From the sequence record NC_048792.1: DNA of 64,000 nt; one strand, given 5' to 3'. This document shows, one piece after another, positions 48,500 to 64,000 of the stretch. A program made the translations under genes and the position numbers. The notes under the pieces were generated by a model that did not search any database, had not been told where the DNA came from, and saw only the letters and a program-made list of their open reading frames with translations. The first letter of the stretch is position 1. Each line of letters starts with the position of its first letter.

Positions 48500-49066
48500 A
48501 TGTACGTTGAGTTATTCGGACGCCCTAAATTTGAGATCCTTGCTGATCTCATCACTGTACAGAACAACGTGACCCCAGCACTGAACGCCAGCTACCTGAC
48601 GTTTGGCGACGTTAAAGGCGCAACTGTTCCTGGTACTGAAGAACGCGTGAGCGTTCCTGTAACCGGTCGTAGCCCTTATAGCGGTCAACGTGTGTTCACG
48701 TATACCCGTATCGATCTGAACAAACTGCTGGGCGCCCAGGGCCCTTCCCTGATCCTGCCAGAGACAGCCAACACCGTAACGGATCTGCTGCCGCTGATTC
48801 AGACCAAATACAAAATCTACATCGATGAAGTTGACGTAGCTAACGCAACTGAACTTCTGCCGTTCATCCCGGAAGGCGAAACTGCGGTCGTCACTGTACA
48901 GACTAAAGCAGGTACGGATTACAACTCCCACGTCTGGAGCGGTAACCTGGACATCACCATCACCGGCGGCATGAAAATGCCACGCGGCGCAATCCTTACC
49001 GAATCTGGTAAAGCGATTACGACCGAGAACGATAAGTTCATCGTCACTGAACAAGGCGGTAATTAA
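48500..49066 (+). CDS. Virion/tail-associated protein, possible tailspike adaptor
   Basis: 188 aa. FTYTRIDL motif seen in jumbo-phage tail proteins; C-terminal ILTESGKAITTENDKFIVTE. Heads the tailspike array. Confidence 0.6.
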   Translation: MYVELFGRPKFEILADLITVQNNVTPALNASYLTFGDVKGATVPGTEERVSVPVTGRSPYSGQRVFTYTRIDLNKLLGAQGPSLILPETANTVTDLLPLIQTKYKIYIDEVDVANATELLPFIPEGETAVVTVQTKAGTDYNSHVWSGNLDITITGGMKMPRGAILTESGKAITTENDKFIVTEQGGN

Positions 49067-49171: not shown

Positions 49172-51388
49172 ATGGCTAACTCAAGCTTAGGCAATCGTAT
49201 TTCGGAACTCCCACGTTCTACGAGATCGATCAACGATGCCGACTTAACCCCGATTTCTCAAATCAAAACCAACAATCCGGAAACCGTAGCGGCAACCGTC
49301 GGTGACATTCGTGCCACCTTGGATTTTGATAATGCTTATAATTCCATCCCAGAAGGCCTGGCAGGGACTTTCCCTGAAGAGCGCTTCTATGTTTACACCG
49401 ATAACTCAAAACGCTTTGTAAACGGCTACATCAACAAAAACGGCGTATCTGAAGTTATCCTCGACAAATCAGGTCAACCTCGTCGCTGGGCTACCCCGCT
49501 CTATATGCTCGCTATCGGTGAGCAATCTATCACAGTAGCTTCTGTTGACCAGATGCGTATCATGGCTCCGCAAGTTGACGGCCAAGTCGTACGTATGCGT
49601 AACTTCCGCCAGGGTAACGTTCAGTACAAAAACGGTGGCGATTGGGTTTACGACGCTAACGACAAAACCACCAAAGACGACGGCGTGATGTGTGTTGTTA
49701 CCAACACCGGCGAACGTTTCAAGCGTGACATCTCTAGCGGCTCTATCGAAACCGATTGGTTCTTCGACCCGGTAATGGATATCGCAGACTATAGTCTGAC
49801 GCTGAACAAAGCCGCTGAGTGGGTGGAAGTAAAAGGTACTGAGTGGTGGCAGACCTGGTTACCAAGCACCCCAGCTTACATTACCATGGTAGGTCCTGGC
49901 GGTGTTCGTACCTGTAAGAAACCAGTATGGCTCCGTATGTGGGCCGTGAGCTGGGACTTCCGTGGTACTTTGCTGGACTTCACTGGAGGTGCTGTCGGTC
50001 AGACCAACGTCTCCGTAGTCTACGGTCACCGTAACTCTACACTGAGCAATCTGCGCATGTTATCCAGCGTAGCGTTGAAGCAGAAGGGTATCAACGTCTC
50101 AACGACTTCCGGTAACATTCACGGTCTGTCCGCAGCGTTCCTGAACTTCAACAACATCTCAATCAACCGTCACGACATTGCTTGGGATCTGGGCGATAAC
50201 TGCTACCTGAACAACTGGTTCCAGTGCACCACCCAAGGTTGTCGTCTGCCAATCAACGCGCCTAAGTCCGCAAACGCCGGTGAAACTCTGGTATGGACTA
50301 AGTGTATCTTCGGTGACGGTATTGGTCCTTACCTGAACACAGGTATGTCGATGACCTTCCACGGTTGTTCCTTTGACTACTCCGGTTACAAAACCGAAGC
50401 TGATCAATTGGCTAACGCCGAGAAAGAAGGTTTGTTCAATATCGATAACTGTACTGTCATCATGTATGGTTGCGGTAACGAATACGGTAACTTGAACAGT
50501 CGCTGGACTGGGCCGGTGTGGAGAGGTTCTGGTATTATCAAGCTTTACGAGTGCCAGTGGATTCTGACTCAATCGAGCACTGTTGAGCCAAAAGAAACTA
50601 CCCCGCACTTGGTCCACAACTACTACTTCGAAGATACCTCTGCCGACTTGTCGTCTAAGGTCTATCTGGAAGGGTTCTACGTCCCTAACCCGGACCTGAA
50701 CCGTTTCTCTGGTAGTTGGACTAATGGCTGCTTCATCAAAGTCACTGAGTCTTACCCAGGCCGTTATAAGGACATGTGGCGTAACTACACGTTGGGTAAG
50801 GGGGCTAACATGTTAATCTCCCCTAATCCTAACAACGTTGGTTATTTGACTATCAACCGTTCTCGTTGCGTTGGCGGCACTGTAATTTCTCCTACTGAGA
50901 CTTCACTGTTCAAAGTGTCTACTAACGGCAACAAGTTAGTAATCACCAGTTCGGATACTACCAAAGCACCTAAAACCTTAAGTTTCTACACTCATGGTAA
51001 AGCGGGTAACTGGTACGGCTCTCGATTAACGGTTACTGGTAATCGGGCAATGCCAGATGTACGTGTCGGTACGAACTGCTTCGGCGTAGTAGGTTACGTA
51101 GCTCAGGATAACAGCATCACTTCGTTGGGCGAGCAACGCCAGACCTGGACTAACTCGCTGCAGGGTATTACAACCACAGCACAATCTACTCCGGGTATGC
51201 GCATGACTCAGTTAGGCACTACTGAATATCTGCCGCTTTGTCCTCCAGGTACCGAATGGGTTCGTGTCTCTATTGAGATGACTAACTTTGGCATCTCAGC
51301 AGGAGAAGAACCTGCGGTATTGGAAATCACCGACTTCTACGCTTGTGAAGTAGGTATCTGTCGCGACACCAACCACCGCGTTTGGTAA
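49172..51388 (+). CDS. Tailspike/depolymerase 1
   Basis: 738 aa. Shared anchor (RISELP..DNAYNSIPEGLAGT..FYVY), KDDG module, and a beta-helix-like Asn/Cys ladder body. Confidence 0.8.
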   Translation: MANSSLGNRISELPRSTRSINDADLTPISQIKTNNPETVAATVGDIRATLDFDNAYNSIPEGLAGTFPEERFYVYTDNSKRFVNGYINKNGVSEVILDKSGQPRRWATPLYMLAIGEQSITVASVDQMRIMAPQVDGQVVRMRNFRQGNVQYKNGGDWVYDANDKTTKDDGVMCVVTNTGERFKRDISSGSIETDWFFDPVMDIADYSLTLNKAAEWVEVKGTEWWQTWLPSTPAYITMVGPGGVRTCKKPVWLRMWAVSWDFRGTLLDFTGGAVGQTNVSVVYGHRNSTLSNLRMLSSVALKQKGINVSTTSGNIHGLSAAFLNFNNISINRHDIAWDLGDNCYLNNWFQCTTQGCRLPINAPKSANAGETLVWTKCIFGDGIGPYLNTGMSMTFHGCSFDYSGYKTEADQLANAEKEGLFNIDNCTVIMYGCGNEYGNLNSRWTGPVWRGSGIIKLYECQWILTQSSTVEPKETTPHLVHNYYFEDTSADLSSKVYLEGFYVPNPDLNRFSGSWTNGCFIKVTESYPGRYKDMWRNYTLGKGANMLISPNPNNVGYLTINRSRCVGGTVISPTETSLFKVSTNGNKLVITSSDTTKAPKTLSFYTHGKAGNWYGSRLTVTGNRAMPDVRVGTNCFGVVGYVAQDNSITSLGEQRQTWTNSLQGITTTAQSTPGMRMTQLGTTEYLPLCPPGTEWVRVSIEMTNFGISAGEEPAVLEITDFYACEVGICRDTNHRVW

Positions 51389-51394
51389 AACAGA

Positions 51395-51435
51395 GGAGAG
51401 GGCTTCGGCCCTCTCCTTATATCGTTTCCTATGAA
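51395..51435 (+). promoter_or_regulatory. Hairpin plus TTCCTATGAA putative late promoter
   Basis: GGAGAGGGC-TTCG-GCCCTCTCC at 51395-51416; TTCCTATGAA at 51426-51435. Confidence 0.6.
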
Positions 51436-51464
51436 ATCTAAACAGACTTTGTAAGGTAAATAAA

Positions 51465-53885
51465 ATGGTTGATCAGGTTAAAATATCTGAGCTAGGTAAG
51501 GCTACCGTTGTACGGGAAAGTGATGCTATCCCGCTGAATAATACAACCACGCGAGGTTTGCCGATTACCAGACAGGCTGATATTACCAATATTCGTTCTG
51601 CAATATTGTTCAATGACGCATTCAACAGTATCGAAGAAGGATTAGATATTACTAATAACGGCGACTCTTTCTACGTCTATAACGATGCAGATAAGTTAAC
51701 AGTTGCTCGGTATTTGAAAATAAACGACGTCGCCAGTCCTGTTGTTGGTGAAGACGGGAAACAGATTATAGAGGGCACGGGTATCGCACTTAAGACTATA
51801 GGTGACCTAGGCGGCCCGTTTGGTTTCGGAGTTGTTGGACGAGTAGACTCCTACGATTCATTGCGTAATTTAGTACCTACTAAAGAGGGTCAGGTAGTTT
51901 ACCTCAACGGATTTCATTCCGGTAGCCATTTAGGCGGGGGTGCATTTATATCCTCGCTAACCTACTCAGTCGATGACGGTGGTACGGTCGCATCTGTCAG
52001 TAATGGTAATTACTCATGGAAACGTCTGTTAGGTAATGAAATAAACTTAGAGATGTTCGGCGCAGTCGGTGATGGCGTAAATGTAGATAATGACTCGATA
52101 GACAATGCTTTGGCGTTTTGTAAGCTCAACGGAAAAAGTGATAATAACATCATTGTTAAGTTGACTAGAAACTACAGGGTAAATAAGTCTTTTGAGTTGA
52201 CAAGCTTTACATCCATCATCGGTCCAGGGGAAATCTTTATTGACTCCCAAGACCTTACTCTGATATTATTCACCGGATCAGACTTAGAGTCACTTCTTAT
52301 TCAAGGGTTGATTATCAGCAGGGCTGTCGATAAACCGGCTACTATGTGGAGTAAGGGCGCAACTGCTATCCAGTTGACTCGGGTAAAAGACTTGACTATT
52401 CGGGACAACGATATCTCGTTACAAACCGACGCTATCTCGGTAAGTAACTCCGACCGAGTCCTGATTGAAAACAACAAAACGCACGAATTAGGCGAAGAAG
52501 GTATTGCCATCCGTAGCAGCCGTAACTTTATTGTCAGAGGTAACCACGTCTTCCACCATCACGGAGATGGGATTTTAATGAAGACGGGTAACATCGAGTG
52601 CCACGATGGTCAGATAGTAGATAACTTCGTTTATGATGGTCTGATCGATCCAGTTGCCGCTGTCGGTCAACGCGGCGGTGGTATAACTCTTAATGACGAA
52701 AATATTAACGGTGCCGGCGGATCTAGTACCACGATGGACGGATTAGTCGTTTCTCGTAATACCTGTCGTAATTTGAGCTATGGTATAGCGTTCAATAACT
52801 TAACCAGCGCGGTTATCCAAGGTAACATCATTACTGGCGTCACGCGATTCGGTTTAGTTATTGATACCACGCCATTCAATAACCCTGCACTTAACCCAGT
52901 ATTACGTTTCTCAGTAAGTGGCAACATCCTAAAGGATATTGGCGAGGTTGGTATCGGGTTCCGTTCAAACCGTGGCATTACGGTAGATTATGTTAGTGTA
53001 ACAGGTAACGTAATTGAGAATGCCGGCTACAAGACTAATGGCGATTTCCCATCGTTAGACATCGGTACCGGTACTGTAACTGGGAATACAGTAGTCAATG
53101 GTAGAGTAGCTATCATGGCCTCCGGGAACGCGTTAATTAACGCTAACCAATTTATCGGATCTCCGTTTACTTCCCCAGGCGCTAACTCGGTATGGATAAA
53201 ATTATCTGAATCGGTGACCTTCAGTAACAACTTAGTGAAGGATACCAATATGGGTCATATTCGGATGTCAGCAACTAAGAATATGATCTTCACTAACAAC
53301 AACATCGATACAGCGAGTACGTACGGTGTTCTGGCGTTCGTCACTTCCGGGCTACCTTACGGTCATTCCATGTTCCGAGATAATATTTATATTACCAAGG
53401 CCCCTTCGGTATGTAACTTTACCATCGGTGCTGACTCTATCAGGTCCTTAGGGTTGAGTAGGGCTGAGTTTGGTAACAACGACTACATGTACGACTCGAC
53501 TTTATCTTCCCTGGTTAACTACAAAAAGGGCGATCGCATTTCCTTAGTTGCCCCAGAGGGAGGAGCGAGTACTTACGTAGTTATCGATGAAACTGGTAAA
53601 AAGGCCGCTGTTGAGTTCACTCCGTATTACGTCAAGTCTAATACGTTTACTCAATCGGTACCGGCCAACGGGACTGCGGTGATCGTGGCACAAGATTCAA
53701 AAGTTAAAGGTACCTGGGCCGTCGGTAAAGTTTGGTGTTCGGTCAATCGTAATGGTGTAATGATTCAGTGCGATTGCACCAAGGATGGGGAAGTAACGAT
53801 TCGATTTGTTAACACGACTGCTGCTACAGTGACGTTGACTAACGCAGTTGTTACACTAGAATGTTTTGAGATGCCTAACATTTAA
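51465..53885 (+). CDS. Tailspike/depolymerase 2 (right-handed beta-helix)
   Basis: 806 aa. KISEL anchor, GGGAF..DDGG..WKR module, MFGAVGDG beta-helix start, many GN-x-repeat rungs, and a C-terminal beta-sandwich. Confidence 0.88.
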   Translation: MVDQVKISELGKATVVRESDAIPLNNTTTRGLPITRQADITNIRSAILFNDAFNSIEEGLDITNNGDSFYVYNDADKLTVARYLKINDVASPVVGEDGKQIIEGTGIALKTIGDLGGPFGFGVVGRVDSYDSLRNLVPTKEGQVVYLNGFHSGSHLGGGAFISSLTYSVDDGGTVASVSNGNYSWKRLLGNEINLEMFGAVGDGVNVDNDSIDNALAFCKLNGKSDNNIIVKLTRNYRVNKSFELTSFTSIIGPGEIFIDSQDLTLILFTGSDLESLLIQGLIISRAVDKPATMWSKGATAIQLTRVKDLTIRDNDISLQTDAISVSNSDRVLIENNKTHELGEEGIAIRSSRNFIVRGNHVFHHHGDGILMKTGNIECHDGQIVDNFVYDGLIDPVAAVGQRGGGITLNDENINGAGGSSTTMDGLVVSRNTCRNLSYGIAFNNLTSAVIQGNIITGVTRFGLVIDTTPFNNPALNPVLRFSVSGNILKDIGEVGIGFRSNRGITVDYVSVTGNVIENAGYKTNGDFPSLDIGTGTVTGNTVVNGRVAIMASGNALINANQFIGSPFTSPGANSVWIKLSESVTFSNNLVKDTNMGHIRMSATKNMIFTNNNIDTASTYGVLAFVTSGLPYGHSMFRDNIYITKAPSVCNFTIGADSIRSLGLSRAEFGNNDYMYDSTLSSLVNYKKGDRISLVAPEGGASTYVVIDETGKKAAVEFTPYYVKSNTFTQSVPANGTAVIVAQDSKVKGTWAVGKVWCSVNRNGVMIQCDCTKDGEVTIRFVNTTAATVTLTNAVVTLECFEMPNI

Positions 53886-53888
53886 CGA

Positions 53889-53923
53889 TCATACGGCCAG
53901 GGGTTTCCCTGGCCTATGTTTGT
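53889..53923 (+). repeat. 35-bp direct repeat, copy 1 (contains hairpin)
   Basis: TCATACGGCCAGGGGTTTCCCTGGCCTATGTTTGT, identical to 56096-56130. Confidence 0.95.
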
Positions 53924-53962
53924 CGTTCCTATGAAATAACTCAATTGGAAAAGGGCCATGAC

Positions 53963-56095
53963 ATGCCAGTCTCCCCAATGAAATTTACTAAGATCTCCGA
54001 CTTACCTAAAAAGGAAGTTATGGAGAACGATCAGTTTATCATCAATACCAACGACACTAAGTTGGATCAAACTAGCGTAGCTTCTCTCTACGATATTCGT
54101 GAGGGTGTCTACTTCAGTAACGCAGCTAACACTATCGCCGAAGGTTTAGCTTCCGTAGACGATAACGAGATGTTCTTTGTTTACGACACCGCGGCTAAGT
54201 TCTCCGTTCTTCAGTACATGAGAGTTCGTAACCAGGCATCGCCCGTCATTGGTTCCGATGGCAAACAACGCCGCTTCCCTACTTATCTTTCCATGCTGAA
54301 CGTAACTGCTATCTCTGAGACGTCCGGTTACGATATCATTGGTAAGGTTGACAATTTCTCCGCGCTGCGTTCTATCAAACCTACCTACACAGGCCAACGT
54401 GTTATCCTGGCTGGGTATTTCTCTGGTAGCTCTTTGGGATCCGGGGAATTTGTGGGGTACGCAGGGACAGCTAACGATGATGGCGGTACTACTGCCTCAG
54501 GTGATGGCTTTTATTGGAAGCGGAACAAGACTGCCTTTACGCTCGAAGATTTCGGTGGCGGTCAAGTAGACGATACTGAAGCAATGCGTGCATCTCAGAA
54601 AGCACAAGTAGGCCCTATTACCCTCTCCCCAGGTAAAACCTATTATTACTCATCCCCGGTAAAACATTATTCTAAAGCCGGCTGGATTGGTAACGGTGCT
54701 TCTATCGTATTCAGAGGGACAGGTAACCGAATTCCGTTTATCTCTTCTCCGACTACAGCCGCTGGCGTTGATAACGACCGCGCAAACGGAAGTACTGCCG
54801 TAACTGGAGCTATCTTTAAAGACCTGACTATTGACGTCAACTATGTCGATACTACGGGTGCATTAGGCTTTGAGTTTGGCGAGAACACGTTAGACAACTG
54901 GACGAATTGCGTCTTTACTAACGTGACATTCAAGAACGGTAAGTTCGATAACTTGGGGCTGCAGAATAACTCCACCGATAACCAGTTTATCCGCTGTACT
55001 TTCATTAACGCAGGTGAAGACTCGGTTACTGTACGCGGCGGTTGTCTCCGTAATGAGTTTGTTGAATGTGATGTTGTCAATAGCGCCCAGGTAGCTCACC
55101 GAGACGGAACCTTCTACGGAGACGGTATCGTCAACAAAGGTCGTGATACCTTGATCAAAAGCTGTCGCTTCATCAATATCGGTAATGGTAAGAAAGGCGC
55201 GGGTATTGCGAATAACGCTGAAGATACCAAGAACGCTGACGAAGCTAGTAACGGTACTTACCTCAACAACTATTTCATTAACTGTTATGGCGGTTTTGGT
55301 TTCGGTACGGTTAACCCAGACTTCATCGCAGCAGGTGATTTGATTAAAGGTATCAAGGCTATCGGAAACGTATTTGTAAATACGCTTCGCACCGTGATAG
55401 GTATTCGTGATCTTTACCAACCGGTTCTGTTGGATAACGTTATCCTTACCCAGACCACCGGTAACGTAACCACGATTGAGATTACCAACTGCACCAACTT
55501 CCAAATGACCGGTCGTGTTACAGATGCCGCTGGCTCCGCTATTACGATTACGTCTTCCTCGGGTAAAGTTGATTTGGTGGCGGATAATGTCTCCACGACC
55601 AAGACACTCAACGGGGTGGTTATTACCGACAGTAATCGGATTACGGGCAGTATCCGTTTGATCAATGCTCAACGCCGCGGCTGTACTTTCTCTAACTGTA
55701 ACAACATGGACTTAGACCTCTACGTTGAGTCGCCTGCACAGGACGCGCTGGAAGCAGTTGGCTGTCGTTACTCTAACTTAGATGTTAAGTTGGTGAACGT
55801 CCCTGAACACGGTATGACATTGAACGGCGTTGTTGAAAGTAATATCAAGTTCAACATCAATGATGCAGGAGTTAAAACTCCATCTGCATTTTATCCGATC
55901 CGGTTACTGGGTGTACGTAACAGTATCCTCAGCGGGGTATCGTCTTCGGCTAATGCGAATAAACCACTTTACGATATTACATCCGATGCTAATAACGTAA
56001 ACGTATTAATCGCCAATAGTCGTCTTGGAGCGGGTACTACGGGTAAAGTACAGGTTGGTCAAGGGTCTACTATTACCCAGAACAATATCATCTAG
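53963..56095 (+). CDS. Tailspike/depolymerase 3 (beta-helix)
   Basis: ORF 53945-56095; ATG at 53963 has RBS AAGGG. KISDLP anchor, GSGEF..DDGG..YWKR, EDFGG, beta-helix repeats. Confidence 0.88.
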   Translation: MPVSPMKFTKISDLPKKEVMENDQFIINTNDTKLDQTSVASLYDIREGVYFSNAANTIAEGLASVDDNEMFFVYDTAAKFSVLQYMRVRNQASPVIGSDGKQRRFPTYLSMLNVTAISETSGYDIIGKVDNFSALRSIKPTYTGQRVILAGYFSGSSLGSGEFVGYAGTANDDGGTTASGDGFYWKRNKTAFTLEDFGGGQVDDTEAMRASQKAQVGPITLSPGKTYYYSSPVKHYSKAGWIGNGASIVFRGTGNRIPFISSPTTAAGVDNDRANGSTAVTGAIFKDLTIDVNYVDTTGALGFEFGENTLDNWTNCVFTNVTFKNGKFDNLGLQNNSTDNQFIRCTFINAGEDSVTVRGGCLRNEFVECDVVNSAQVAHRDGTFYGDGIVNKGRDTLIKSCRFINIGNGKKGAGIANNAEDTKNADEASNGTYLNNYFINCYGGFGFGTVNPDFIAAGDLIKGIKAIGNVFVNTLRTVIGIRDLYQPVLLDNVILTQTTGNVTTIEITNCTNFQMTGRVTDAAGSAITITSSSGKVDLVADNVSTTKTLNGVVITDSNRITGSIRLINAQRRGCTFSNCNNMDLDLYVESPAQDALEAVGCRYSNLDVKLVNVPEHGMTLNGVVESNIKFNINDAGVKTPSAFYPIRLLGVRNSILSGVSSSANANKPLYDITSDANNVNVLIANSRLGAGTTGKVQVGQGSTITQNNII

Positions 56096-56130
56096 TCATA
56101 CGGCCAGGGGTTTCCCTGGCCTATGTTTGT
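56096..56130 (+). repeat. 35-bp direct repeat, copy 2
   Basis: Identical to 53889-53923; begins immediately after the TSP3 stop codon. Confidence 0.95.
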
Positions 56131-56170
56131 TCATATGACAGTTTCCTAAAACAATCAGGATAAGTATACA

Positions 56171-58246
56171 ATGGCCGATAAATCACCAGTTAAAATATCT
56201 CAGTTACCCGAGCCTACCGGGACTGGGATTAACGATAGCGACATCTTCGCGGCATCCCGTATAACGGGAGCAGATAAGTTAGAGACTCAACGTATCACTG
56301 TCAGCGAATTGCGTAAGCTGATGGATTACGGTAATGCATTCTCTGACTTGAACGCAGCTATTGCAGCAACCGTTAAAGATCAACAGTTTTACGTATTCGT
56401 TGATGACTCGAAAGAGTTCGTTTACCGTTACGTGAACATGGGCGGAATTGCTTCCCCAGTTTTAAGTGCCGATGGTACACCTGTTAAAGAACCAACTAAA
56501 AACTTACTGCGTAATCTTGGCGATATTAAAAGTCAAGATGGTTTCGGTTTAGTTGGGGCAGTGACCTCTTTCGATGCCCTGCGTAAGTTAACACCTCGTG
56601 CTGCCGGCTGGCGAGTCTATCTTGCAGGTTATTACGAAGGGACTACTTTAGGTTCCGGATTCTTCGTTTCTAAATCTGGTGTAGCTACTGATGACCAAGG
56701 TGTCATTGCCGTTGTTAACGGTAGCTATTATTGGGAACGTGTACTGGAAACTAACGAAAGTATCCCAATGGATTATTACGGTATCCGTCCTGGTGATGAT
56801 ATTTCCGATAAACTCAACTTTGCAGTTATTGCAGCTAAAGTTCGGAATATCGTAGATATCTCTTTGCCAGGGACACCTTTCGACAAACCATTCATCCTTT
56901 CTAAAAAAGTAGATATCGATCTCACCGATGGAAAGGTCATCTTTATTAAAGGTGCATGTAACAAGATCGGTACAATCATTCAACATAGGTTCGATGGAAC
57001 CGCATTCTATTTCCACCGCAACCATGTGTCCAGTAAGAACTTCTGGAACACTGGCGGTATTGAGAATGTTACAATCACCTGCCATACTGACTATCAACAG
57101 ACAGCAACTGCGGCTGCAATCCAGATTTCAGATACCTGGGGCTTTATTGTAAACCGTGTTCGTATCCTTAACTTCAAAGCCGGCAACGGTATCGTCGTTA
57201 AGAATGAGACAGCATGGACTGAAGGGACTAAGATCACCGACGTCGATATTCGAGCCACTCAAAACGGCGTGCTGTTTACCAGGGATGTAACCAACGATAA
57301 GAACACCAACTCGTTCTTCGGTACTTACTTCAATCAATATAGTTTCCAGGCCGGTACTGGTAAGGCTGGGACTTCAGCTATTCGCGTAGGTGACGCAGCT
57401 ACCGATGCCGCTAACAAAACTTGTGTCCTCTACGGTTCTGAAATTCAGTTCCGCTATTGGGCAGAAGGTGGCGGCGCTAACTTCGGACTGATGGTTTCTA
57501 GTAGTGGCCAGGTTACATCAGGCAACACGCTAATTATCCCAGATGGCGTTGGGCTAAGTGCTAATGATACTATCACCGCTACTCCGCTTAAATGTATCGC
57601 AGTACGTGGTAATGGGACCTACCTGAACAACACGACAATCGAACCTTACCAGGGGAGAATGAACTGCTTCAAGGTTAAGGATATTAACTTTGCACTGGAA
57701 GCTCTGCTCAGTTTTGAGAAAGGCGTCGGCGTCAACAGTACCTTGTTCAAAGGCCGTCCAGTTATCGATCCTAAAGGCCTGCGGTTCTATACCTACCAAG
57801 AGTTCACCGGGGATGAAATCAAAGATGGATTCTCAGTTGGGATGACTAACCTTCCGGTAGGTACTCGTCTACGTGTTGTGTTACGCTACTCTACTACCGA
57901 CAATGATGATAACAGCCGTATATCTTCGTACATCGTTTCTGTTGGTGGTGCTGGTATGTTCACTACAGTAGCTCCGGAGAATATCGCTATTCTTAATAAT
58001 GTCACAACGACTAAGTCAGCAGTTAGTGGGACGGATGTTGTTACTGATGTAGGGATTAACGATGGGCGTTCACGCCTTAACGATTGGGTGGATACTGCGA
58101 CAAGTCCACGCGTCGTTAACGGTAACGCAACGCAGACTAACAAAGACGGCTACGGAACCAACGCACGTAACTTCCGCATCGTTGTACCAGCTAACCCGGC
58201 TGCTACAGCTACCCTGAAACTGGGTGTTGAAGTGGAATTCATTTAA
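56171..58246 (+). CDS. Tailspike/depolymerase 4
   Basis: 691 aa. KISQLP anchor, GSGFF..DDQG..YWER, DYYGIRPGD, beta-helix-like body. Confidence 0.85.
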   Translation: MADKSPVKISQLPEPTGTGINDSDIFAASRITGADKLETQRITVSELRKLMDYGNAFSDLNAAIAATVKDQQFYVFVDDSKEFVYRYVNMGGIASPVLSADGTPVKEPTKNLLRNLGDIKSQDGFGLVGAVTSFDALRKLTPRAAGWRVYLAGYYEGTTLGSGFFVSKSGVATDDQGVIAVVNGSYYWERVLETNESIPMDYYGIRPGDDISDKLNFAVIAAKVRNIVDISLPGTPFDKPFILSKKVDIDLTDGKVIFIKGACNKIGTIIQHRFDGTAFYFHRNHVSSKNFWNTGGIENVTITCHTDYQQTATAAAIQISDTWGFIVNRVRILNFKAGNGIVVKNETAWTEGTKITDVDIRATQNGVLFTRDVTNDKNTNSFFGTYFNQYSFQAGTGKAGTSAIRVGDAATDAANKTCVLYGSEIQFRYWAEGGGANFGLMVSSSGQVTSGNTLIIPDGVGLSANDTITATPLKCIAVRGNGTYLNNTTIEPYQGRMNCFKVKDINFALEALLSFEKGVGVNSTLFKGRPVIDPKGLRFYTYQEFTGDEIKDGFSVGMTNLPVGTRLRVVLRYSTTDNDDNSRISSYIVSVGGAGMFTTVAPENIAILNNVTTTKSAVSGTDVVTDVGINDGRSRLNDWVDTATSPRVVNGNATQTNKDGYGTNARNFRIVVPANPAATATLKLGVEVEFI

Positions 58247-58254
58247 TAAAACCA

Positions 58255-58296
58255 GAGGAGGGGAAACCCTCCTCTTTTATTTTGGGTTCCTATGAA
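58255..58296 (+). promoter_or_regulatory. Terminator hairpin plus TTCCTATGAA putative late promoter
   Basis: GAGGAGGG-GAAA-CCCTCCTC then TTTTATTTT; TTCCTATGAA at 58287-58296. Confidence 0.6.
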
Positions 58297-58326
58297 TATT
58301 TACACAATATCATGAGGCTTACGTCC

Positions 58327-61300
58327 ATGTCAGATAACGATTTACAATTGCGCATTACCGAGTTGCCGAAGTTAGACCACTTCGACTCCAACTCTGTTCT
58401 CCCTGCGGTAGGGCGTAGTCAAGGCGCTAAAATGACAGGTAAAGTTAACTTCCGTGAAATGCGGAGTTACTTCGATTTGTCAAACGCCTACGAAACTATT
58501 AAGGACGGTGTCGATGCCACTAAGCTAGGTGATACGTTCTTCGTCTACTCTGATGGCACCAAAGTATTCGCCAACGAATACCAGAACATCGGTGGTGCCG
58601 CTACCCCAATCCAAGATCCCAAAGAAGGGGTCATCTATTACCCAACGCGTATGGGTATTGTAGGTAGTCTGGCTGCCGGTGCTACCGTAGGTAGCTTTGA
58701 TGAACTCCGTAACACTCGCCCGTTAAAAGAGGGCGTTAGCATTTATCTCAGTAGCTATTATAAAGGCCTTAATAAAGGTGGCGGTGAGTTTATTGGTTAT
58801 TACGGTAAACGTGCCGACGATGGCGGCATGGTAGCCGGTGACGGGAATAACTACTACTGGGTACGTAACGCTAACTTCGTCACTCCGGAAATGTTTGGTG
58901 CTTACGGTGCCCCTGAAAAAGATGACTCCGCTGCTATAGAAGGGGCACTGAACTCAGGATTAGATGTCCAGTTCGACGGTAGCGCTACTTATATCGTCAA
59001 CCGTACTCTTGTCCTGAAGTCAATCAAGTGGCAACAGTTCATCGACGGTAACGGAGCTTGGATCAAGTATTCCGATAAATCCCGTGGGTTTATTAACGAG
59101 ATTGACGCCAATGGTGTTACTCAGCGTTACACGAAGTTCCGTAGCTTCTTCAACTTAAATCTCCAGGGCCCTGCTACCAAGAACTCTAAGTGGAACGACG
59201 TTAACCAGTGCGATGCTCTCTGCATTAGCTACGGTGTAGTTGAAAACTGTAACTTCTACGGCTGGTCTAACGCCCTGCGTGGTTTCGGTGAAGCCTACGT
59301 AAACAACTGCTTTGGCGACGACCTTCGTACAGCAATGTTCTCTTGCTACGATCCAGGGTATAACGAAATCATTAACAGCTCGGTTGGTTGGTGTTCTGGT
59401 GACGCGATCATCCTTAAAGGCGGTTCAGGTAAAGCTCACAACGTCGATATCGTCTACGCAGGATGTATTGACAAAAACAACGAAGACGGCGCTACGGCTC
59501 TCCCAGGTTGTATCGTGTCATGTGGCGCAGATGGAGCCGGATCTCAAAACATCCAGATCTCCAACATCAGCTGCCAATACTTCGGTTGTGCCGGTCTGAA
59601 CATCCAAGGTGACGGCGTAACGGTTTCAGGTGACATGAACCTAGGCTCTATCTACGAAGATAACTTCCAGTATGCTAACCAAGCGGCTGCTTTGTGGATC
59701 GGCGCTAAGAACTTCACCATCGGTAACTTGCACTTTAACAAAGTACACGTTGGTGTAGGGATCAACGGTAACTGCGCGAATGGTTCGATTGGTAAGATTC
59801 GGATCATGAGCAAAACCAACCTGGCAGGATCTACTCTGTTCTCGGCAACAGATGGCCCTAACTCCCAGATCACCAAAGTTATCGTGGACGCAATTGACTT
59901 CCTCGGCGCCTCTACGATTAACAACGACGTTTACATCAACACCGATGGTCTGTATCTGAAATCGTTCTATATCCAATCCTTGAACAACCTTCAAGGCGGT
60001 TATACGGTTTCTCTGCGTAAGAACGCCCGTATTGGTAAAATGATTCTGGCGGCTACGACTTCAGCAAGTACAAGTCCGGTAATGCTCATCGAGAGCGATT
60101 CTGTCATCGATGAACTGGAGTTCCGTCGTAACTTCGGTACCGCATTGGTAGTTGAGAATAATGCTCGCCCGGCGATCAAGCGTCTTTCCTTCCAGTACAA
60201 ACAAGGTATTGCTGCACCGTTCATTATTAAAGGTGACGGTACCATGACCTTGAACTGGGGTGACGTCGATATGTTCGGTCCGAGTGTGGCTCGTCCTCAG
60301 ATCGCTGGTAAGCTCGTAATGAACTCTTACCAAGGCCCTACGTTCCGTCCGTTTGATGCAGCCGTATATGCAGGCGTTTCTGTACCTAATCGCGTGTTCC
60401 AGGGTATAGAAGAAATGCGTATGGTAGGTCCGTCCAAAGAAGGTGACACCGCTTACCTTTCTGGTTATTACCTTAACAGTACCAGTACATTAGGTAGCGG
60501 TACTTTCATCGGACACATTGGCGCTGCTCCTGTGGCAGACGACAAAGGTTGTTTGATCGTAGGTAACGGTTACTGGTGGGAACGTATCGTGGCTGGCCCT
60601 CTGGATGTATTCATGTTCGGGGCTAAAGGCGACTTTAACGTAACCACCCAATCTGGTACGGATGACTCGGATTCATTCATCAGCACTATTGCCGCTGCCA
60701 TTCGTTTAAACTACCGTGACGTATTGGTCCCTGCCGGTTACAACTACTACCTGACTAAAACCATCAACCCAGGTGGTGTAGGTTATCGCGGTAATAAAGG
60801 CGTTGCTATCCGCGGCGGGTCTACCGCCAACACGAATATCTTCTTCAACCCAGCTACCAATGGAACTGCATGTTTTGAGATTCTCGGTGGTTCAGGTATT
60901 CACTCAGGACGCGAAGTTTCTGGTTTTACGATTCAGCCCGTTAACAGTAAACTTTACACTGGTGTTGGTATTCGTTACGCCGGCTGTTGCTTCGTAAGGC
61001 CTGCTAACTTCAATATCATCATGAAGTTCGATATAGCACTTCACTTACTGAACGACCAAGGCCCAGGGGTATTTACCGAATACAACAACTTCTTTAACTG
61101 GCGTCTGCACCGTTCACACGTTGATGTCCTGTTCGAAGTTAACGGTGGCGATAACTCGTTCCACGGTAACAGCTTCTACGAAAGTCAGATTCAGGTTAAA
61201 ACGAATCAGAACTTGGGTGACGGTAACACCGACGTAGGTATCGGTATTGAGTTAAGGGGCGTAACCGCACCAGCATACTGGTACGATGCTAAGGTATTTG

Positions 61301-62370
61301 TTGATATCTTCGGCGGCCCAGGTGCTATCGGGATGAAACTTACCCGTGCTAACACTGACCACTTGATCGGAGGTATCAATGGCGAAGGTGATTTGATCTT
61401 CCAGAGCACCGATACCTCTGCTTTCGAGTTGGCGGGTGATCTGCGCAGTATTGGTAAGGTAACCTGGGATGTGGCCGCCGAACCAACCACGGGTCGAGCT
61501 GCTGTCTACATCTTCAATAACCGAATCAGTAACGAATCCAACTTCACCTCCCCACGGATGAATGGACTTAGTCCGAGACTTTTGAATCCTTCTCTGGCCG
61601 ATAGAACGGACAACGGGTCAGTTCCTGCTATATTCCGTGCAACTAAGTTAGACTATGACAGTATCTGTAACGCGGTGATTGGGTTGGCAAATAACCGCCA
61701 CCTTTGGGGTTATATTCCACCTAACGGTAACCTGCAGAGTTTCGTACCTGGCGCAGCGCTATCGTTCGATGGCACCTCGTTTACTAGCTACAGTGATTCG
61801 TTTATTATCGGGACCCAGAACAGAACCTTCTCCATTAATGGCACTGCTCTGTTCCCGTCTACTACAGGTAGCTTAACCCTTGGTCAGTCTCAATATCGCT
61901 GGAGTAGTATCTACCTCAATAACTTCGACATTGATTCAAATGGGATTAACCCGGTAGTAACTAATGCGATGTCAATTGGTAGTACGAGTAAGATCTTCAA
62001 GGATATCTATCTCCAAAATGCTCCAACTGTTGTTTCCGATGAAAAGGATAAGGATGAAGTTTCCGAAATCCCTCCTGAGGTTATTGCTGCATGGGGTAAA
62101 ATAAACTTCTCTCAATGGAAAATGAAAACGGCCATTGACGAGAAGGGAGAGAAAGCCAGATTGCACGTTGGTGTAATCGCGCAAGATATACAGAAGGCTT
62201 TCCAGGAAGCTAATTTGGATGCCACGGATTACGGTATCTTAATTATCGAGAAAGACGAAGACGAGAACGAACAATGGATGGTTCGCATGGATGAGTGCCT
62301 TGTACTAGAGGCCGCTTACCAGCGTAGTCGTTTGGATGAGATTGAGAAATTACTTAAAGGTAAGAAATAG
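58327..62370 (+). CDS. Tailspike 5: two tandem depolymerase modules plus a C-terminal S74-type intramolecular chaperone
   Basis: ATG at 58327 (RBS GAGG). The DDG..W-R..FGA module occurs twice. C-terminus VSDEKDK..ARLHVGVIAQD..YGIL..VRMDECL followed by a coiled coil. Confidence 0.85.
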   Translation: MSDNDLQLRITELPKLDHFDSNSVLPAVGRSQGAKMTGKVNFREMRSYFDLSNAYETIKDGVDATKLGDTFFVYSDGTKVFANEYQNIGGAATPIQDPKEGVIYYPTRMGIVGSLAAGATVGSFDELRNTRPLKEGVSIYLSSYYKGLNKGGGEFIGYYGKRADDGGMVAGDGNNYYWVRNANFVTPEMFGAYGAPEKDDSAAIEGALNSGLDVQFDGSATYIVNRTLVLKSIKWQQFIDGNGAWIKYSDKSRGFINEIDANGVTQRYTKFRSFFNLNLQGPATKNSKWNDVNQCDALCISYGVVENCNFYGWSNALRGFGEAYVNNCFGDDLRTAMFSCYDPGYNEIINSSVGWCSGDAIILKGGSGKAHNVDIVYAGCIDKNNEDGATALPGCIVSCGADGAGSQNIQISNISCQYFGCAGLNIQGDGVTVSGDMNLGSIYEDNFQYANQAAALWIGAKNFTIGNLHFNKVHVGVGINGNCANGSIGKIRIMSKTNLAGSTLFSATDGPNSQITKVIVDAIDFLGASTINNDVYINTDGLYLKSFYIQSLNNLQGGYTVSLRKNARIGKMILAATTSASTSPVMLIESDSVIDELEFRRNFGTALVVENNARPAIKRLSFQYKQGIAAPFIIKGDGTMTLNWGDVDMFGPSVARPQIAGKLVMNSYQGPTFRPFDAAVYAGVSVPNRVFQGIEEMRMVGPSKEGDTAYLSGYYLNSTSTLGSGTFIGHIGAAPVADDKGCLIVGNGYWWERIVAGPLDVFMFGAKGDFNVTTQSGTDDSDSFISTIAAAIRLNYRDVLVPAGYNYYLTKTINPGGVGYRGNKGVAIRGGSTANTNIFFNPATNGTACFEILGGSGIHSGREVSGFTIQPVNSKLYTGVGIRYAGCCFVRPANFNIIMKFDIALHLLNDQGPGVFTEYNNFFNWRLHRSHVDVLFEVNGGDNSFHGNSFYESQIQVKTNQNLGDGNTDVGIGIELRGVTAPAYWYDAKVFVDIFGGPGAIGMKLTRANTDHLIGGINGEGDLIFQSTDTSAFELAGDLRSIGKVTWDVAAEPTTGRAAVYIFNNRISNESNFTSPRMNGLSPRLLNPSLADRTDNGSVPAIFRATKLDYDSICNAVIGLANNRHLWGYIPPNGNLQSFVPGAALSFDGTSFTSYSDSFIIGTQNRTFSINGTALFPSTTGSLTLGQSQYRWSSIYLNNFDIDSNGINPVVTNAMSIGSTSKIFKDIYLQNAPTVVSDEKDKDEVSEIPPEVIAAWGKINFSQWKMKTAIDEKGEKARLHVGVIAQDIQKAFQEANLDATDYGILIIEKDEDENEQWMVRMDECLVLEAAYQRSRLDEIEKLLKGKK

Positions 62371-62377
62371 ACATAGC

Positions 62378-62415
62378 GCGGAGGGGAAACCCTCCGCCTA
62401 TTTTGTTCCTATGAA
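62378..62415 (+). promoter_or_regulatory. Hairpin plus TTCCTATGAA putative late promoter
   Basis: GCGGAGGG-GAAA-CCCTCCGC; TTCCTATGAA at 62406-62415. Confidence 0.6.
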
Positions 62416-62445
62416 ACATTACTCTCTTATACTAGGTGCAAACCC

Positions 62446-64000
62446 ATGGCCGATAATTTCAGCGGTATTAAGATTAGTCAGTTAGACGATCCTAATCGTA
62501 TTAACGACAACGATATCATCCCGTTCACTAACGATGACATGGGCGATAAACAAACACGTAAAATAAAGTTAAGTGCCCTACGTGATCAGCTCAATTACGA
62601 TAACGCTTTCCTAACCGTGCAGGAAGGTTTAGCCAACACTATCCCAGGACAGATCTTCCACGTATACGTTGACGACACTCAGTTAGAAGTCTACGCGTAC
62701 CTTAACAGTAATGGTGCAGCAGAGATCGTCCAAGATGCGCAGGGTAATCCTTTTAAAGGACAAACCGCCAAAGCGCTGGACTTCATTCGTGGTGAGTTAG
62801 GACTTACCATGATCGGTCACGTAAGTTCCTTTGCACGACTGCGCGAAATCAAACCTCCTTTCGAAGGTGCTATTGTAGAACTTCTGGGTTGGAACGAGGG
62901 CTCCACTTACGGCGGTGGTCGTTTCCAAGGCAATCTGTCTACGGGAGCTGACGACAACGGTATTGTTGCGGCAGGCGACGGTTTCCACTGGCGTCGCATT
63001 AATGTCGACGAAGGCATTAACCCAGAGTGGTTCGGTTACGTGAATGGTTCAGGTAATGACGTATCCACTACGTTGAAACAAGCCATTGCTCAGGCGGTTA
63101 ACCTGAAACGTCCTGTTGTATTCCGCGATGGGGCTCAAATGAGTCTAGCGGTAGCAGGGATTGAAATTCCAGTAGGCGTTGATCTTACTGTGGCTAACGG
63201 TGGGAGAGCTTACTTTGAAATCACTCACGAAATCGAAACAACCGGACAGTTCCTTGTCAAAAGTAAAAACCGAATCTCCGGACTTGTCTTCAACTACCCG
63301 AAACAAACGAAAGACATCAATGCTAAGCCGATTGTGCGTTACGGACCTATTTTTGTCGGTGCTGGATTTTATTCTTCTTTCACGGGAATAAACGTAGGTA
63401 ACGCATACTACGGATTTAAGATCGGCGGTAATGACGAAGGCTCCGCATCGTACATCACGATGAAAGACATTAACGGCGCCCCTATCTATCGTGGAATTTC
63501 ACTTGACCGCGTTCTGGACATCCCTCGTATTTCTGATATCCATTGGAACTACAACATGTACCTGAACTCCGATCAGGACTACGCACCATCTCTGAAACAG
63601 TGGATCCATGAGAATGGTGAGGCGTTCCATTTTGGTCGTGTTGACTTTGCTGAGGTACAACGTATCTTTGCATTCGGGTACAGTAAAGGTATCTTCCTGA
63701 GAGGTGAGCGTTATGCGGGGAGCGCTGATTCCATTCGCTTCACGGGTTGCGATATGGACATCTGTGTTAACCCTATCTACGCTCAGAACTTTAGTGGTCA
63801 GTTAGTTATTCGTAACGGTAAGTTCACGGGTAACGGTAATAACCTGAATGGGTTGACTGCGCCGGCTAACGGTTGTTTCAACTACTTCCAACGCGTGTCT
63901 CCGTATGCACGAGTCATCTTGGATTCAGTTACCATGAACAACTACGACCGCGATGCTATTCGTACGGGTAACGACACGATCATCAGTAACAGTAAGATCT
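62446..64000 (+). CDS. Tailspike/depolymerase 6, truncated by the window end
   Basis: Not in the ORF track; translated by hand: MADNFSGIKISQLDD..YDNAFLTVQEGLANT..FHVY..GGGRF..ADDNG..HWRR..PEWFG, open to 64000. Confidence 0.88.
   Translation, partial: MADNFSGIKISQLDDPNRINDNDIIPFTNDDMGDKQTRKIKLSALRDQLNYDNAFLTVQEGLANTIPGQIFHVYVDDTQLEVYAYLNSNGAAEIVQDAQGNPFKGQTAKALDFIRGELGLTMIGHVSSFARLREIKPPFEGAIVELLGWNEGSTYGGGRFQGNLSTGADDNGIVAAGDGFHWRRINVDEGINPEWFGYVNGSGNDVSTTLKQAIAQAVNLKRPVVFRDGAQMSLAVAGIEIPVGVDLTVANGGRAYFEITHEIETTGQFLVKSKNRISGLVFNYPKQTKDINAKPIVRYGPIFVGAGFYSSFTGINVGNAYYGFKIGGNDEGSASYITMKDINGAPIYRGISLDRVLDIPRISDIHWNYNMYLNSDQDYAPSLKQWIHENGEAFHFGRVDFAEVQRIFAFGYSKGIFLRGERYAGSADSIRFTGCDMDICVNPIYAQNFSGQLVIRNGKFTGNGNNLNGLTAPANGCFNYFQRVSPYARVILDSVTMNNYDRDAIRTGNDTIISNSKI

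Follow-up and report, generated by a model that had tools for sequence, protein, structure and literature searches.

How can a single jumbo bacteriophage carry many different receptor-binding proteins, and which part of each protein holds it on the virion? This question is raised by a 64,000 nt stretch of sequence record NC_048792.1 (the window), which corresponds to bases 124001-188000 of the genome of Serratia phage Moabite, MK994515.1 (100% identity by megablast, window bases 30000-64000). Moabite is a 273,933-bp phiKZ-like jumbo myophage of the genus Moabitevirus, isolated on Serratia marcescens D1. Positions 49172-64000 of the window are occupied by six large open reading frames (ORFs), gp191-gp196, in tandem on the + strand. 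We propose that they belong to a receptor-binding arsenal, in which eight tailspikes would be anchored in parallel by a common N-terminal domain, module 1, and their bodies would be swapped as cassettes. We give this reading a probability of roughly 75%.

The coordinates of the features are collected in Table 1. The initial annotation of the window had predicted at least six tailspikes. The tandem array is real and the count is higher: the whole genome contains eight tandem module-1 spike genes, gp191-gp198, the last two lying just beyond the end of the window. They form a cluster of paralogous spike genes within a phiKZ-like genome, with virion RNA polymerase (RNAP) and prohead protease genes nearby, according to the MK994515 annotation and to synteny with Klebsiella phage phiKp24. 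GenBank labels gp191 as a "neck protein" and gp192-gp196 as "tail fiber protein". In an all-against-all BLASTP comparison, the N-terminal 160-240 amino acids (aa) of gp191-gp198 show 26-41% identity, with E values from 1e-11 to 1e-35, while the bodies of the six spikes in the window give no matches to one another. The predicted N-terminal anchor of about 110 aa, common to all six genes and followed by mutually unrelated bodies, is thus borne out. The sequence motif proposed for it was too strict: KIS[EQD]L is literally found in only four of the six genes, and the relaxed forms [KR]I[ST][EQD]L and F[YFH]V[YF] are found in all eight. A motif of the following domain, module 2 ([SN]x..[LM]R...P), is also present in all eight spikes.

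Module 1 comprises about aa 1-108. In an AlphaFold2 model of gp194 it appears as a beta-hairpin, two short helices and four short strands (a small beta-meander), followed by a short helix at aa 110-121. The mean predicted local distance difference test score (pLDDT) is 82.7 for aa 1-122 and 83 for aa 1-220. A Foldseek search of the PDB with the aa 1-122 model gives no fold match, the best hit having E 0.9 and a probability under 0.2; neither a gp10-like domain nor the N-terminal domain of CBA120 tailspikes is matched. When BFVD is searched in the same way, both modules are matched solely in Moabitevirus and phiKp24-like proteins. The description of the anchor as one small domain of about 108 aa and unknown fold may be new within the literature we have searched.

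Module 2, a domain of about 90 aa, is of a different kind. It starts at aa 106-114 in all eight Moabite spikes, directly after module 1 and with no insert between them. A profile of the N-terminal region matches solved tailspikes through its second half only, just before their beta-helix: Depo32 (7vyv, 7vz3), DpK2 (7lzj), WceF (6tgf), CBA120 TSP2 and TSP4, K2-2 TSP and others. Foldseek with the gp194 aa 1-220 model agrees, its matches to solved tailspikes also running through module 2; those to 6w4q, 5w6p and 5w6h are limited to this module by both methods. Because these matches precede the beta-helix of many tailspikes, we consider module 2 a widespread pre-beta-helix domain and not a lineage-specific anchor. 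The two-part anchor originally described must therefore be reduced to module 1, as module 2 is generic, moves with the body and is missing in 39% of the proteins described below.

Module 1 is found by tblastn (query gp194 aa 1-115) in 23 phage records, with three to eight copies each. These all belong to Moabitevirus or to the phiKp24-like phages of Klebsiella. When 1.84 billion representative proteins are searched with a profile, 134 with module 1 are found. Of the 112 representatives with at least 450 aa, 109 have it at their very N-terminus. Module 2 is present in 67 of these 109 proteins and absent from 42; eight of the 109 have an insert of 100-200 aa between both modules and four are double-bodied. 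Weak profile matches to several stretches of the long proteins P0122, P0126 and P0134, which have unrelated or no Pfam content, were discarded as noise. The number of module-1 spikes per phage goes from four in Totoro to eight, with six clear ones in 2050HW and BUCT660.

A second setting is found in P2-like prophages, where module 1 (aa 1-93, without module 2) heads spikes of 666-698 aa encoded directly after the portal gene. These loci also hold GPO, P2 capsid, gpL/R/S, Ogr, GPA, Cox and integrase genes, and one of the spike bodies resembles Serratia siphophage tailspikes (36-43% identity). Jumbo phages are thus not the only carriers of the anchor; its presence in P2-like prophages may be new within the literature searched. 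A 144-kb phiKZ-like metagenomic contig has a solitary module-1 spike (P0093, 730 aa), surrounded by non-structural genes, so a tandem array is not obligatory for the module-1 family. A second module-1 ORF lies about 10 kb away on the opposite strand. We have also noted the case of Pectobacterium phage vB_ParM-25 (ON375847), whose recorded host is Pectobacterium aroidearum. Its array has eight positions, as in Kodama, and its DNA is about 95-98% identical to the arrays of Serratia phages over common cassettes: The recorded host and the spike repertoire seem to be at odds.

Comparison of related phages shows which part of the genes is kept and which part is exchanged. Within Moabitevirus, anchors at the same position are 92-100% identical, versus 25-42% among paralogues. 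At position 4, the anchor is 95% identical to those of 2050HW, Kodama, BUCT660 and ParM-25, module 2 only 42%, and the body is unrelated. At position 5 (gp195), Kodama and BUCT660 differ in the distal cassette alone, whose replacement sets in at about aa 707, where a second module 2 starts. Nearly the entire gene is replaced between isolates at positions 2 and 8; for example, gp192 is replaced from about aa 30-35 onward in most relatives. Bodies are also found at other positions. The position-4 spike of Totoro bears the body of Moabite position 7 (the gp197 segment from aa 95 to the end), and at position 6 of BUCT660 the N-terminal half of gp196 is fused to the position-8 body of Kodama. In 2050HW (MF285618), the annotation divides each of positions 2, 7 and 8 into two ORFs that form a single ORF in its relatives; these divisions are either real disruptions or sequencing errors of an older assembly.

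The mosaic junctions are sharp. DNA homology ends at about aa 97 in gp194 and at about aa 707 in gp195, begins at aa 95 in gp197 (compared with Totoro), and resumes at the intergenic hairpins, where the 3' ends of the exchanged cassettes are located. Since homology breaks near the end of module 1 and resumes at the hairpins, the unit of exchange is module 2 plus the body, and for this reason we define the anchor as module 1 alone. The junction recurs at about aa 95-97, in agreement with the boundary of module 1 (aa 93) in the P2-like prophage spikes which lack module 2. This recurrent exchange junction may be new within the literature searched. The same pattern is found in the Klebsiella clade: each anchor is 72-94% identical to one clear partner, the second best being about 40-50%, and the rest of the protein is often unrelated. 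Anchors of Moabite and phiKp24 are 28-44% identical throughout, and no one-to-one orthology can be resolved between them.

These observations suggest the following arrangement. Eight separately transcribed genes would each give rise to a presumably trimeric tailspike, built from module 1 as docking domain, the short helix at about aa 110-121, module 2 capping the body, and a distinct body able to recognise or degrade polysaccharides. Module 1 would fix each spike to the virion, most likely at the baseplate periphery, independently of the others and with no branching primary fibre. The bodies would lend the particle several glycan specificities, directed to the capsule or O-antigen of Serratia. 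The repertoire would evolve by swapping module 2 and body between the junction at the end of module 1 and the intergenic hairpin, the anchor staying in place as part of the phage backbone. Parallel docking is favoured because no Moabite spike has an insert between modules, because the number of spikes varies from four to eight, and because the "primary" and "peripheral" fibres of phiKp24 share the anchor. The architecture, distribution and junctions of the spikes and the regulatory linkers between their genes are observed in the genomes; their location in the virion, trimer state, enzymatic activity, substrates and docking partner are what we infer.

Several facts weigh against this arrangement. 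Homologues of gp190, the gene just upstream of the array, are found in exactly those 23 phage records which hold module 1; this co-occurrence is confounded by the common ancestry of all 23 genomes. The annotated tail fibres downstream of the array, gp200, gp210 and gp211, do not have module 1 and must attach otherwise, so some hierarchy is possible. The module-1 model is that of a monomer of a probable trimer. A catalytic-family Pfam match is found on one body only (gp192), and the bodies of gp191, gp194 and gp196 have no solved or named relatives when their profiles are compared with the PDB. In the literature searched there is no paper analysing gp191-gp198, and the genome announcement is silent on tails. 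Finally, the conservation of anchors by position could equally mean that each anchor has a site of its own.

This last point leads to another reading, in which docking is not equivalent: each of the eight anchors would fit its own site, and the array would represent a scaffold of eight distinct sockets. The divergence of paralogous anchors, so much larger than that found at a given position, is what would be expected, and the clear partners of the Klebsiella clade agree with it. On the other hand, anchors of Moabite and phiKp24 show no one-to-one orthology, although gp190 is 70% identical to its phiKp24 counterpart, and the bodies of gp197 and of Kodama position 8 are found behind the anchors of positions 4 and 6, in Totoro and BUCT660 respectively. 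Besides, recombination restricted to the region downstream of the anchor would by itself yield positional conservation. We consider eight distinct sockets a serious possibility, somewhat short of an even chance. As regards the equivalent docking claimed in the initial annotation, anchors which diverge as paralogues and are kept as position-specific orthologues would fit either one kind of site or separate sites.

The closest known system is that of phiKp24 (vB_KpM_FBKp24, Maaswegvirus), also a phiKZ-like jumbo myophage. The likeness to this phage, which had been suggested as a parallel, is true homology: module 1 is found on seven of its fibres, gp301, gp306, gp307, gp308, gp309, gp310 and gp312, which the module-1 hidden Markov model (HMM) matches at E values from 1e-23 to 1e-32. 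Both arrays are syntenic, flanked by the gp190/gp314 homologues on one side and by the gp210-211/gp294-295 pair on the other, and in the phiKp24 clade anchors are likewise conserved and bodies swapped. Judged by anchor homology and synteny, the Moabite array is part of the fibre system known as "hyperbranched" in phiKp24. The public record of the Moabite genome already includes the "tail fiber" annotation, so the system is not new in kind. There are also differences. Moabite infects Serratia and has eight module-1 spikes, while phiKp24 infects Klebsiella and has seven. Module 2 is present on all Moabite spikes and on only some phiKp24 fibres.

The published model of phiKp24 places its fibres at the baseplate, with gp306 as the primary fibre, provided with T4gp10-like docking domains, and gp301 as a secondary one (Ouyang 2022, PMC9700779). 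By extension, one or two Moabite spikes might bind the baseplate and the others dock on them, the N-terminus being a spike-to-spike connector in a hierarchical, branched assembly of the type demonstrated for CBA120. The long gp195 could offer a lateral surface for this purpose, gp200 needs a carrier as it has no module 1, and eight of the module-1 representatives do have an insert between modules. In phiKp24 itself, gp306 has an insert of about 200 aa (the one reported as T4gp10-like) between modules, with module 2 at about aa 320-410, and gp301 carries this insert after module 1. Inserts of this type are missing from all eight Moabite spikes. In addition, gp306, gp301 and five other phiKp24 fibres (four of them in the G3 set of the paper) all carry module 1, the Moabite anchor model resembles neither gp10 nor the CBA120 N-terminus, as indicated above, and the size of the array (four, six or eight module-1 spikes) depends on the phage. 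A branched assembly is thus unlikely, and independent docking of each spike remains our preferred reading.

Table 1. Position of the spike genes, their modules and associated elements. Coordinates are those of the window, except for the prophage spikes.
Feature	Coordinates	Strand	Parts and remarks	Basis
gp190, 188 aa, conserved virion protein (DUF7941)	48500..49066	+	adjoins the array upstream	Pfam DUF7941 2.5e-11
Spike 1, gp191, 738 aa	49172..51388	+	module 1 49172-49501, module 2 49502-49816, body 49817-51385	module HMM
Spike 2, gp192, 806 aa	51465..53885	+	module 1 51465-51791, module 2 51792-52115, beta-helix body 52116-53882	
Spike 3, gp193, 710 aa	53963..56095	+	module 1 53963-54295, module 2 54299-54601, body 54602-56092	module HMM
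Spike 4, gp194, 691 aa	56171..58246	+	module 1 56171-56509, module 2 56510-56824, body 56825-58243	
Spike 5, gp195, 1347 aa	58327..62370	+	module 1 58327-58650, module 2 58651-58953, body A 58954-60372	
gp195, distal part		+	second module 2 60373-60693, body B 60694-62034, Peptidase_S74 chaperone from 62035	
Spike 6, gp196, 731 aa	62446..64000	+	module 1 62446-62769, module 2 62770-63090, body after; cut by the window end at aa 518, complete gene at L001 20447-22642	module HMM
GC-rich hairpin	51393..51418	+	directly after gp191 stop	terminator-like scan
Equivalent hairpins	53895-53914, 56102-56121, 58254-58275, 62378-62397	+		
12-nt motif with TATG	53925..53936; also 49112, 51425, 56129, 58286, 62405	+		intergenic alignment
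P2-like prophage module-1 spikes	L011 4519-6615; L013 10001-12001		metagenome/SRA contigs	

The spike bodies are very diverse. The right-handed beta-helix glycosidase threshold of Pfam is only passed by gp192, with matches to Beta_helix (1.1e-19, 71 bits, gathering cut-off 25.9 bits), NosD (3e-15) and Glyco_hydro_28 (2.1e-5, 24.2 bits, cut-off 22.9 bits). Serratia phages phiMAM1, 2050H1 and Eta have tailspikes with 38% identity to its body. The body of gp193 gives no Pfam match; it is about 40% identical to proteins of the Serratia Ackermannviridae phages phiMAM1, 2050H1 and 3M. The gp194 body has 22-27% identity to tail fibre or spike proteins of Klebsiella phages. The gp196 body resembles an Acinetobacter phage ABPH49 protein at 41% identity and, at 33%, a Klebsiella tail spike. 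Pfam at E<=1 gives no further body domains beyond those of gp192 and the S74 domain of gp195. Single-sequence phmmer searches of the PDB with the gp191 and gp192 bodies find nothing, and the shallow family profiles of gp191, gp194 and gp196 match the PDB through module 2 only.

The longest spike, gp195, is double-bodied, with module-2 matches at aa 109-209 and 683-789. Tail spikes with 25-35% identity to body A occur in phages of Serratia, Klebsiella and Stenotrophomonas. An hhalign comparison of body A with the gp192 body, using shallow profiles, gives a probability of 0.2, which is uninformative, so its beta-helix fold rests on the tailspike homologues. Body B is found by itself in a single-bodied spike of 784 aa (P0008, 60% identity), and an alignment of about 570 positions links its family to PDB 7y5s (E 2.7e-92). 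This structure was deposited as "phage tail fiber" and may come from Klebsiella phage Kp7. The protein ends in a Peptidase_S74 chaperone (aa 1237-1296, PF13884, E 3.9e-12, 46.7 bits, cut-off 22 bits), a region which matches PDB 3gw6, 3gud and 6eu4. The family of body B thus ends in an S74 chaperone, as known from endosialidase-type C-terminal chaperones; what sets gp195 apart is that this whole unit follows a further complete spike body on one polypeptide chain. The initial annotation had stated that no spike has a long extra scaffold, which holds for the boundary between modules 1 and 2, where there is no insert, but not for gp195, with its 1347 aa, second module 2 and two bodies. Its description of all bodies as beta-helices is direct for gp192 (Pfam) and indirect for gp195 body B (through 7y5s); for the others it relies on homology to annotated tailspikes and on notes by the depositors.

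The array had been interpreted in a Klebsiella setting, which does not apply: the host is Serratia marcescens and the nearest relatives of the bodies are tailspikes of other Serratia phages. The Moabite bodies probably act on surface polysaccharides of this species. No body is near a characterised enzyme, which makes new depolymerase specificities plausible, as had been predicted. We should also consider that the bodies might be binding-only fibres and not depolymerases. Five of the seven bodies in the window (gp191, gp193, gp194, gp195 body A and gp196) have no match to a catalytic family or a solved structure, and phiKp24 gives no visible halo. Nevertheless, gp192 matches GH28 and Beta_helix, module 2 is typical of enzymatic tailspikes, and 11 of the 14 receptor-binding proteins (RBPs) of phiKp24 are active depolymerases, as confirmed in DepoCatalog 2026 (PMC13385381). 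Purely binding bodies are therefore quite improbable, and we keep the reading of bodies that recognise or degrade polysaccharides.

The first spike, gp191, deserves a separate comment. Its body is 95-100% conserved in Moabitevirus (83% in Totoro) and gives neither a Pfam match nor a PDB sequence match. Apart from its genus and its paralogue gp200 (27% identity), its only relative is found in the Stenotrophomonas jumbo phage BUCTxx100 (29.5%). The "neck protein" label derives, according to the GenBank note, from an HHpred match to the beta-helix of phi29 gp12.

The linkers between spike genes are also characteristic. A scan of the window for terminator-like elements finds 22, versus 13.9 expected; the five strongest lie 5-10 nt past the stop codons of spike genes, and GenBank lists two of the array hairpins as terminators. 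An identical 20-nt sequence forms the hairpins that follow gp192 and gp193. All five intergenic hairpins of the array are alike and coincide with the 3' ends of exchanged cassettes; besides being terminators, they may act as recombination linkers. A 12-nt motif containing TATG is located 30-60 nt upstream of the spike start codons, followed by a Shine-Dalgarno sequence. The exception is gp197, which follows gp196 across a 12-nt spacer and has no TATG motif before its start. Of 12 matches to the motif in the window (up to two mismatches), six are found in six short spacers, all on the + strand. The core of the phiKZ late promoter is T(-3)ATG(+1) (PMC7598289). With a hairpin and a TATG linker for each gene, the array looks like a row of monocistronic late cassettes. 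A scan for sigma-70 promoters gives fewer than expected by chance (17 versus 22), which was to be expected because the phage uses its own RNA polymerases.

The late-type linkers, common to the array genes except for the motif of gp197, are relevant to the idea that some members are not baseplate receptor-binding proteins at all. Such members might instead belong to the neck or head as appendages, or be enzymes freed at lysis. This idea is suggested by the gp191 label, by the lack of an anchor in gp200, and by the P2-like prophages, whose module-1 spike gene directly follows the portal gene, away from the tail genes. However, the "neck" label reflects similarity of the body to a beta-helix and not a location, and electron microscopy of phiKp24 and its relatives puts a complex fibre apparatus at the baseplate. 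We regard such roles as very unlikely, the periphery of the baseplate being the preferred one for the spikes.

Other phages with several spikes help to place the array. Ackermannviridae such as CBA120 also carry several tailspikes per virion, TSP1-4 (5w6p, 6w4q, 5w6h), with a homologous module 2 before the beta-helix of TSP2 and TSP4, and Serratia phages of this family have spikes related to the gp192 and gp193 bodies and to body A of gp195. CBA120 assembles its spikes through gp10-like domains of TSP2 and TSP4, while Moabite module 1 has no sequence or fold similarity to the CBA120 N-termini. The jumbo phages phiK64-1 and RaK2 (Alcyoneusvirus) follow the same strategy of many capsule-specific spikes per virion and belong to an unrelated lineage. 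The likeness to phiK64-1 proposed initially is an analogy only: module-1 queries from gp194 and from a P2-like prophage spike matched no phage record outside Moabitevirus and phiKp24-like phages, and Alcyoneusvirus is absent both from the 23 module-1 records and from those holding the flanking backbone (tblastn, megablast). The podophages KP32, K11 and KP34, which infect Klebsiella, use a branching domain in RBP1 and a conserved peptide in RBP2 (PMC13352976). In them, too, the N-terminal attachment element is conserved and the enzymatic bodies can be exchanged, but there are two RBPs in a defined hierarchy, while Moabite has eight spikes with a full folded anchor domain. In this respect gp200, with about 13 aa before module 2, resembles the peptide-docked secondary RBP of these systems.

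Some neighbouring proteins may take part in docking. In phiKp24, gp314 likewise flanks the array, as gp190 does in Moabite. We consider gp190, which consists of a DUF7941 domain alone, a candidate partner of module 1. Two proteins encoded downstream, gp210 and gp211 (L001 32310-36438), have DUF7941 N-termini like gp190 and are both conserved in phiKp24. These DUF7941 proteins may be a second class of anchors or a docking platform. A ninth spike-like protein, gp200 (L001 27341-29158), has module 2 at aa 14-96, and phiKp24 gp303 and gp304 have a similar anchor-less layout. Because the 23 genomes form a single clade, docking roles for gp190, gp200, gp210 and gp211 can only be inferred. The small ORFs adjoining spike genes (gp199, the P2-like ones, phiKp24 gp302, gp305 and gp311) show no similarity to gp188-gp190. 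We have rejected gp199 as a split-off module 1 by comparison with the module profile, and have abandoned a conserved companion protein, chaperone or adaptor, as a hypothesis, since gp199, the P2-like ORFs of 99 and 252 aa, and phiKp24 gp302, gp305 and gp311 have no mutual similarity.

A further observation concerns the virion RNAP beta gene (window 35955-40466), one continuous gene of 4512 nt in the Moabite annotation. The corresponding place has two RNAP-beta ORFs separated by an HNH endonuclease gene in 2050HW, Kodama, Totoro, ParM-25 and Haymo; BUCT660 has the same two-ORF split, with no endonuclease annotated. We take this as a sign of a mobile insertion which is missing from Moabite.

As to the meaning of these results, multi-spike jumbo phages are, to our knowledge, the phages with the broadest range for capsulated enterobacteria. 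The mounting of a dozen spikes on one baseplate has so far been modelled, not seen. The locus and its relatives add one anchor domain of about 108 aa, one recurrent junction for the exchange of bodies, and the fact that "primary" and "peripheral" fibres of phiKp24 have the same anchor. The definition of this anchor offers structural work on existing virions a concrete target. We know of very few depolymerases described for surface polysaccharides of Serratia marcescens, and the Moabite bodies represent uncharacterised putative enzymes which are probably directed against them. A bolder, rather doubtful possibility is that module 1 is an undescribed portable virion-docking domain with no solved relatives, by which up to eight spikes would dock in parallel in a phiKZ-type baseplate, possibly through gp190, and which would be traded between lytic jumbo phages and temperate P2-like phages of one host group. 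If this were true, the hierarchy published for phiKp24 would have to be revised, because the fibre which it treats as the sole primary one, gp306, has the same anchor as gp301 and five others.

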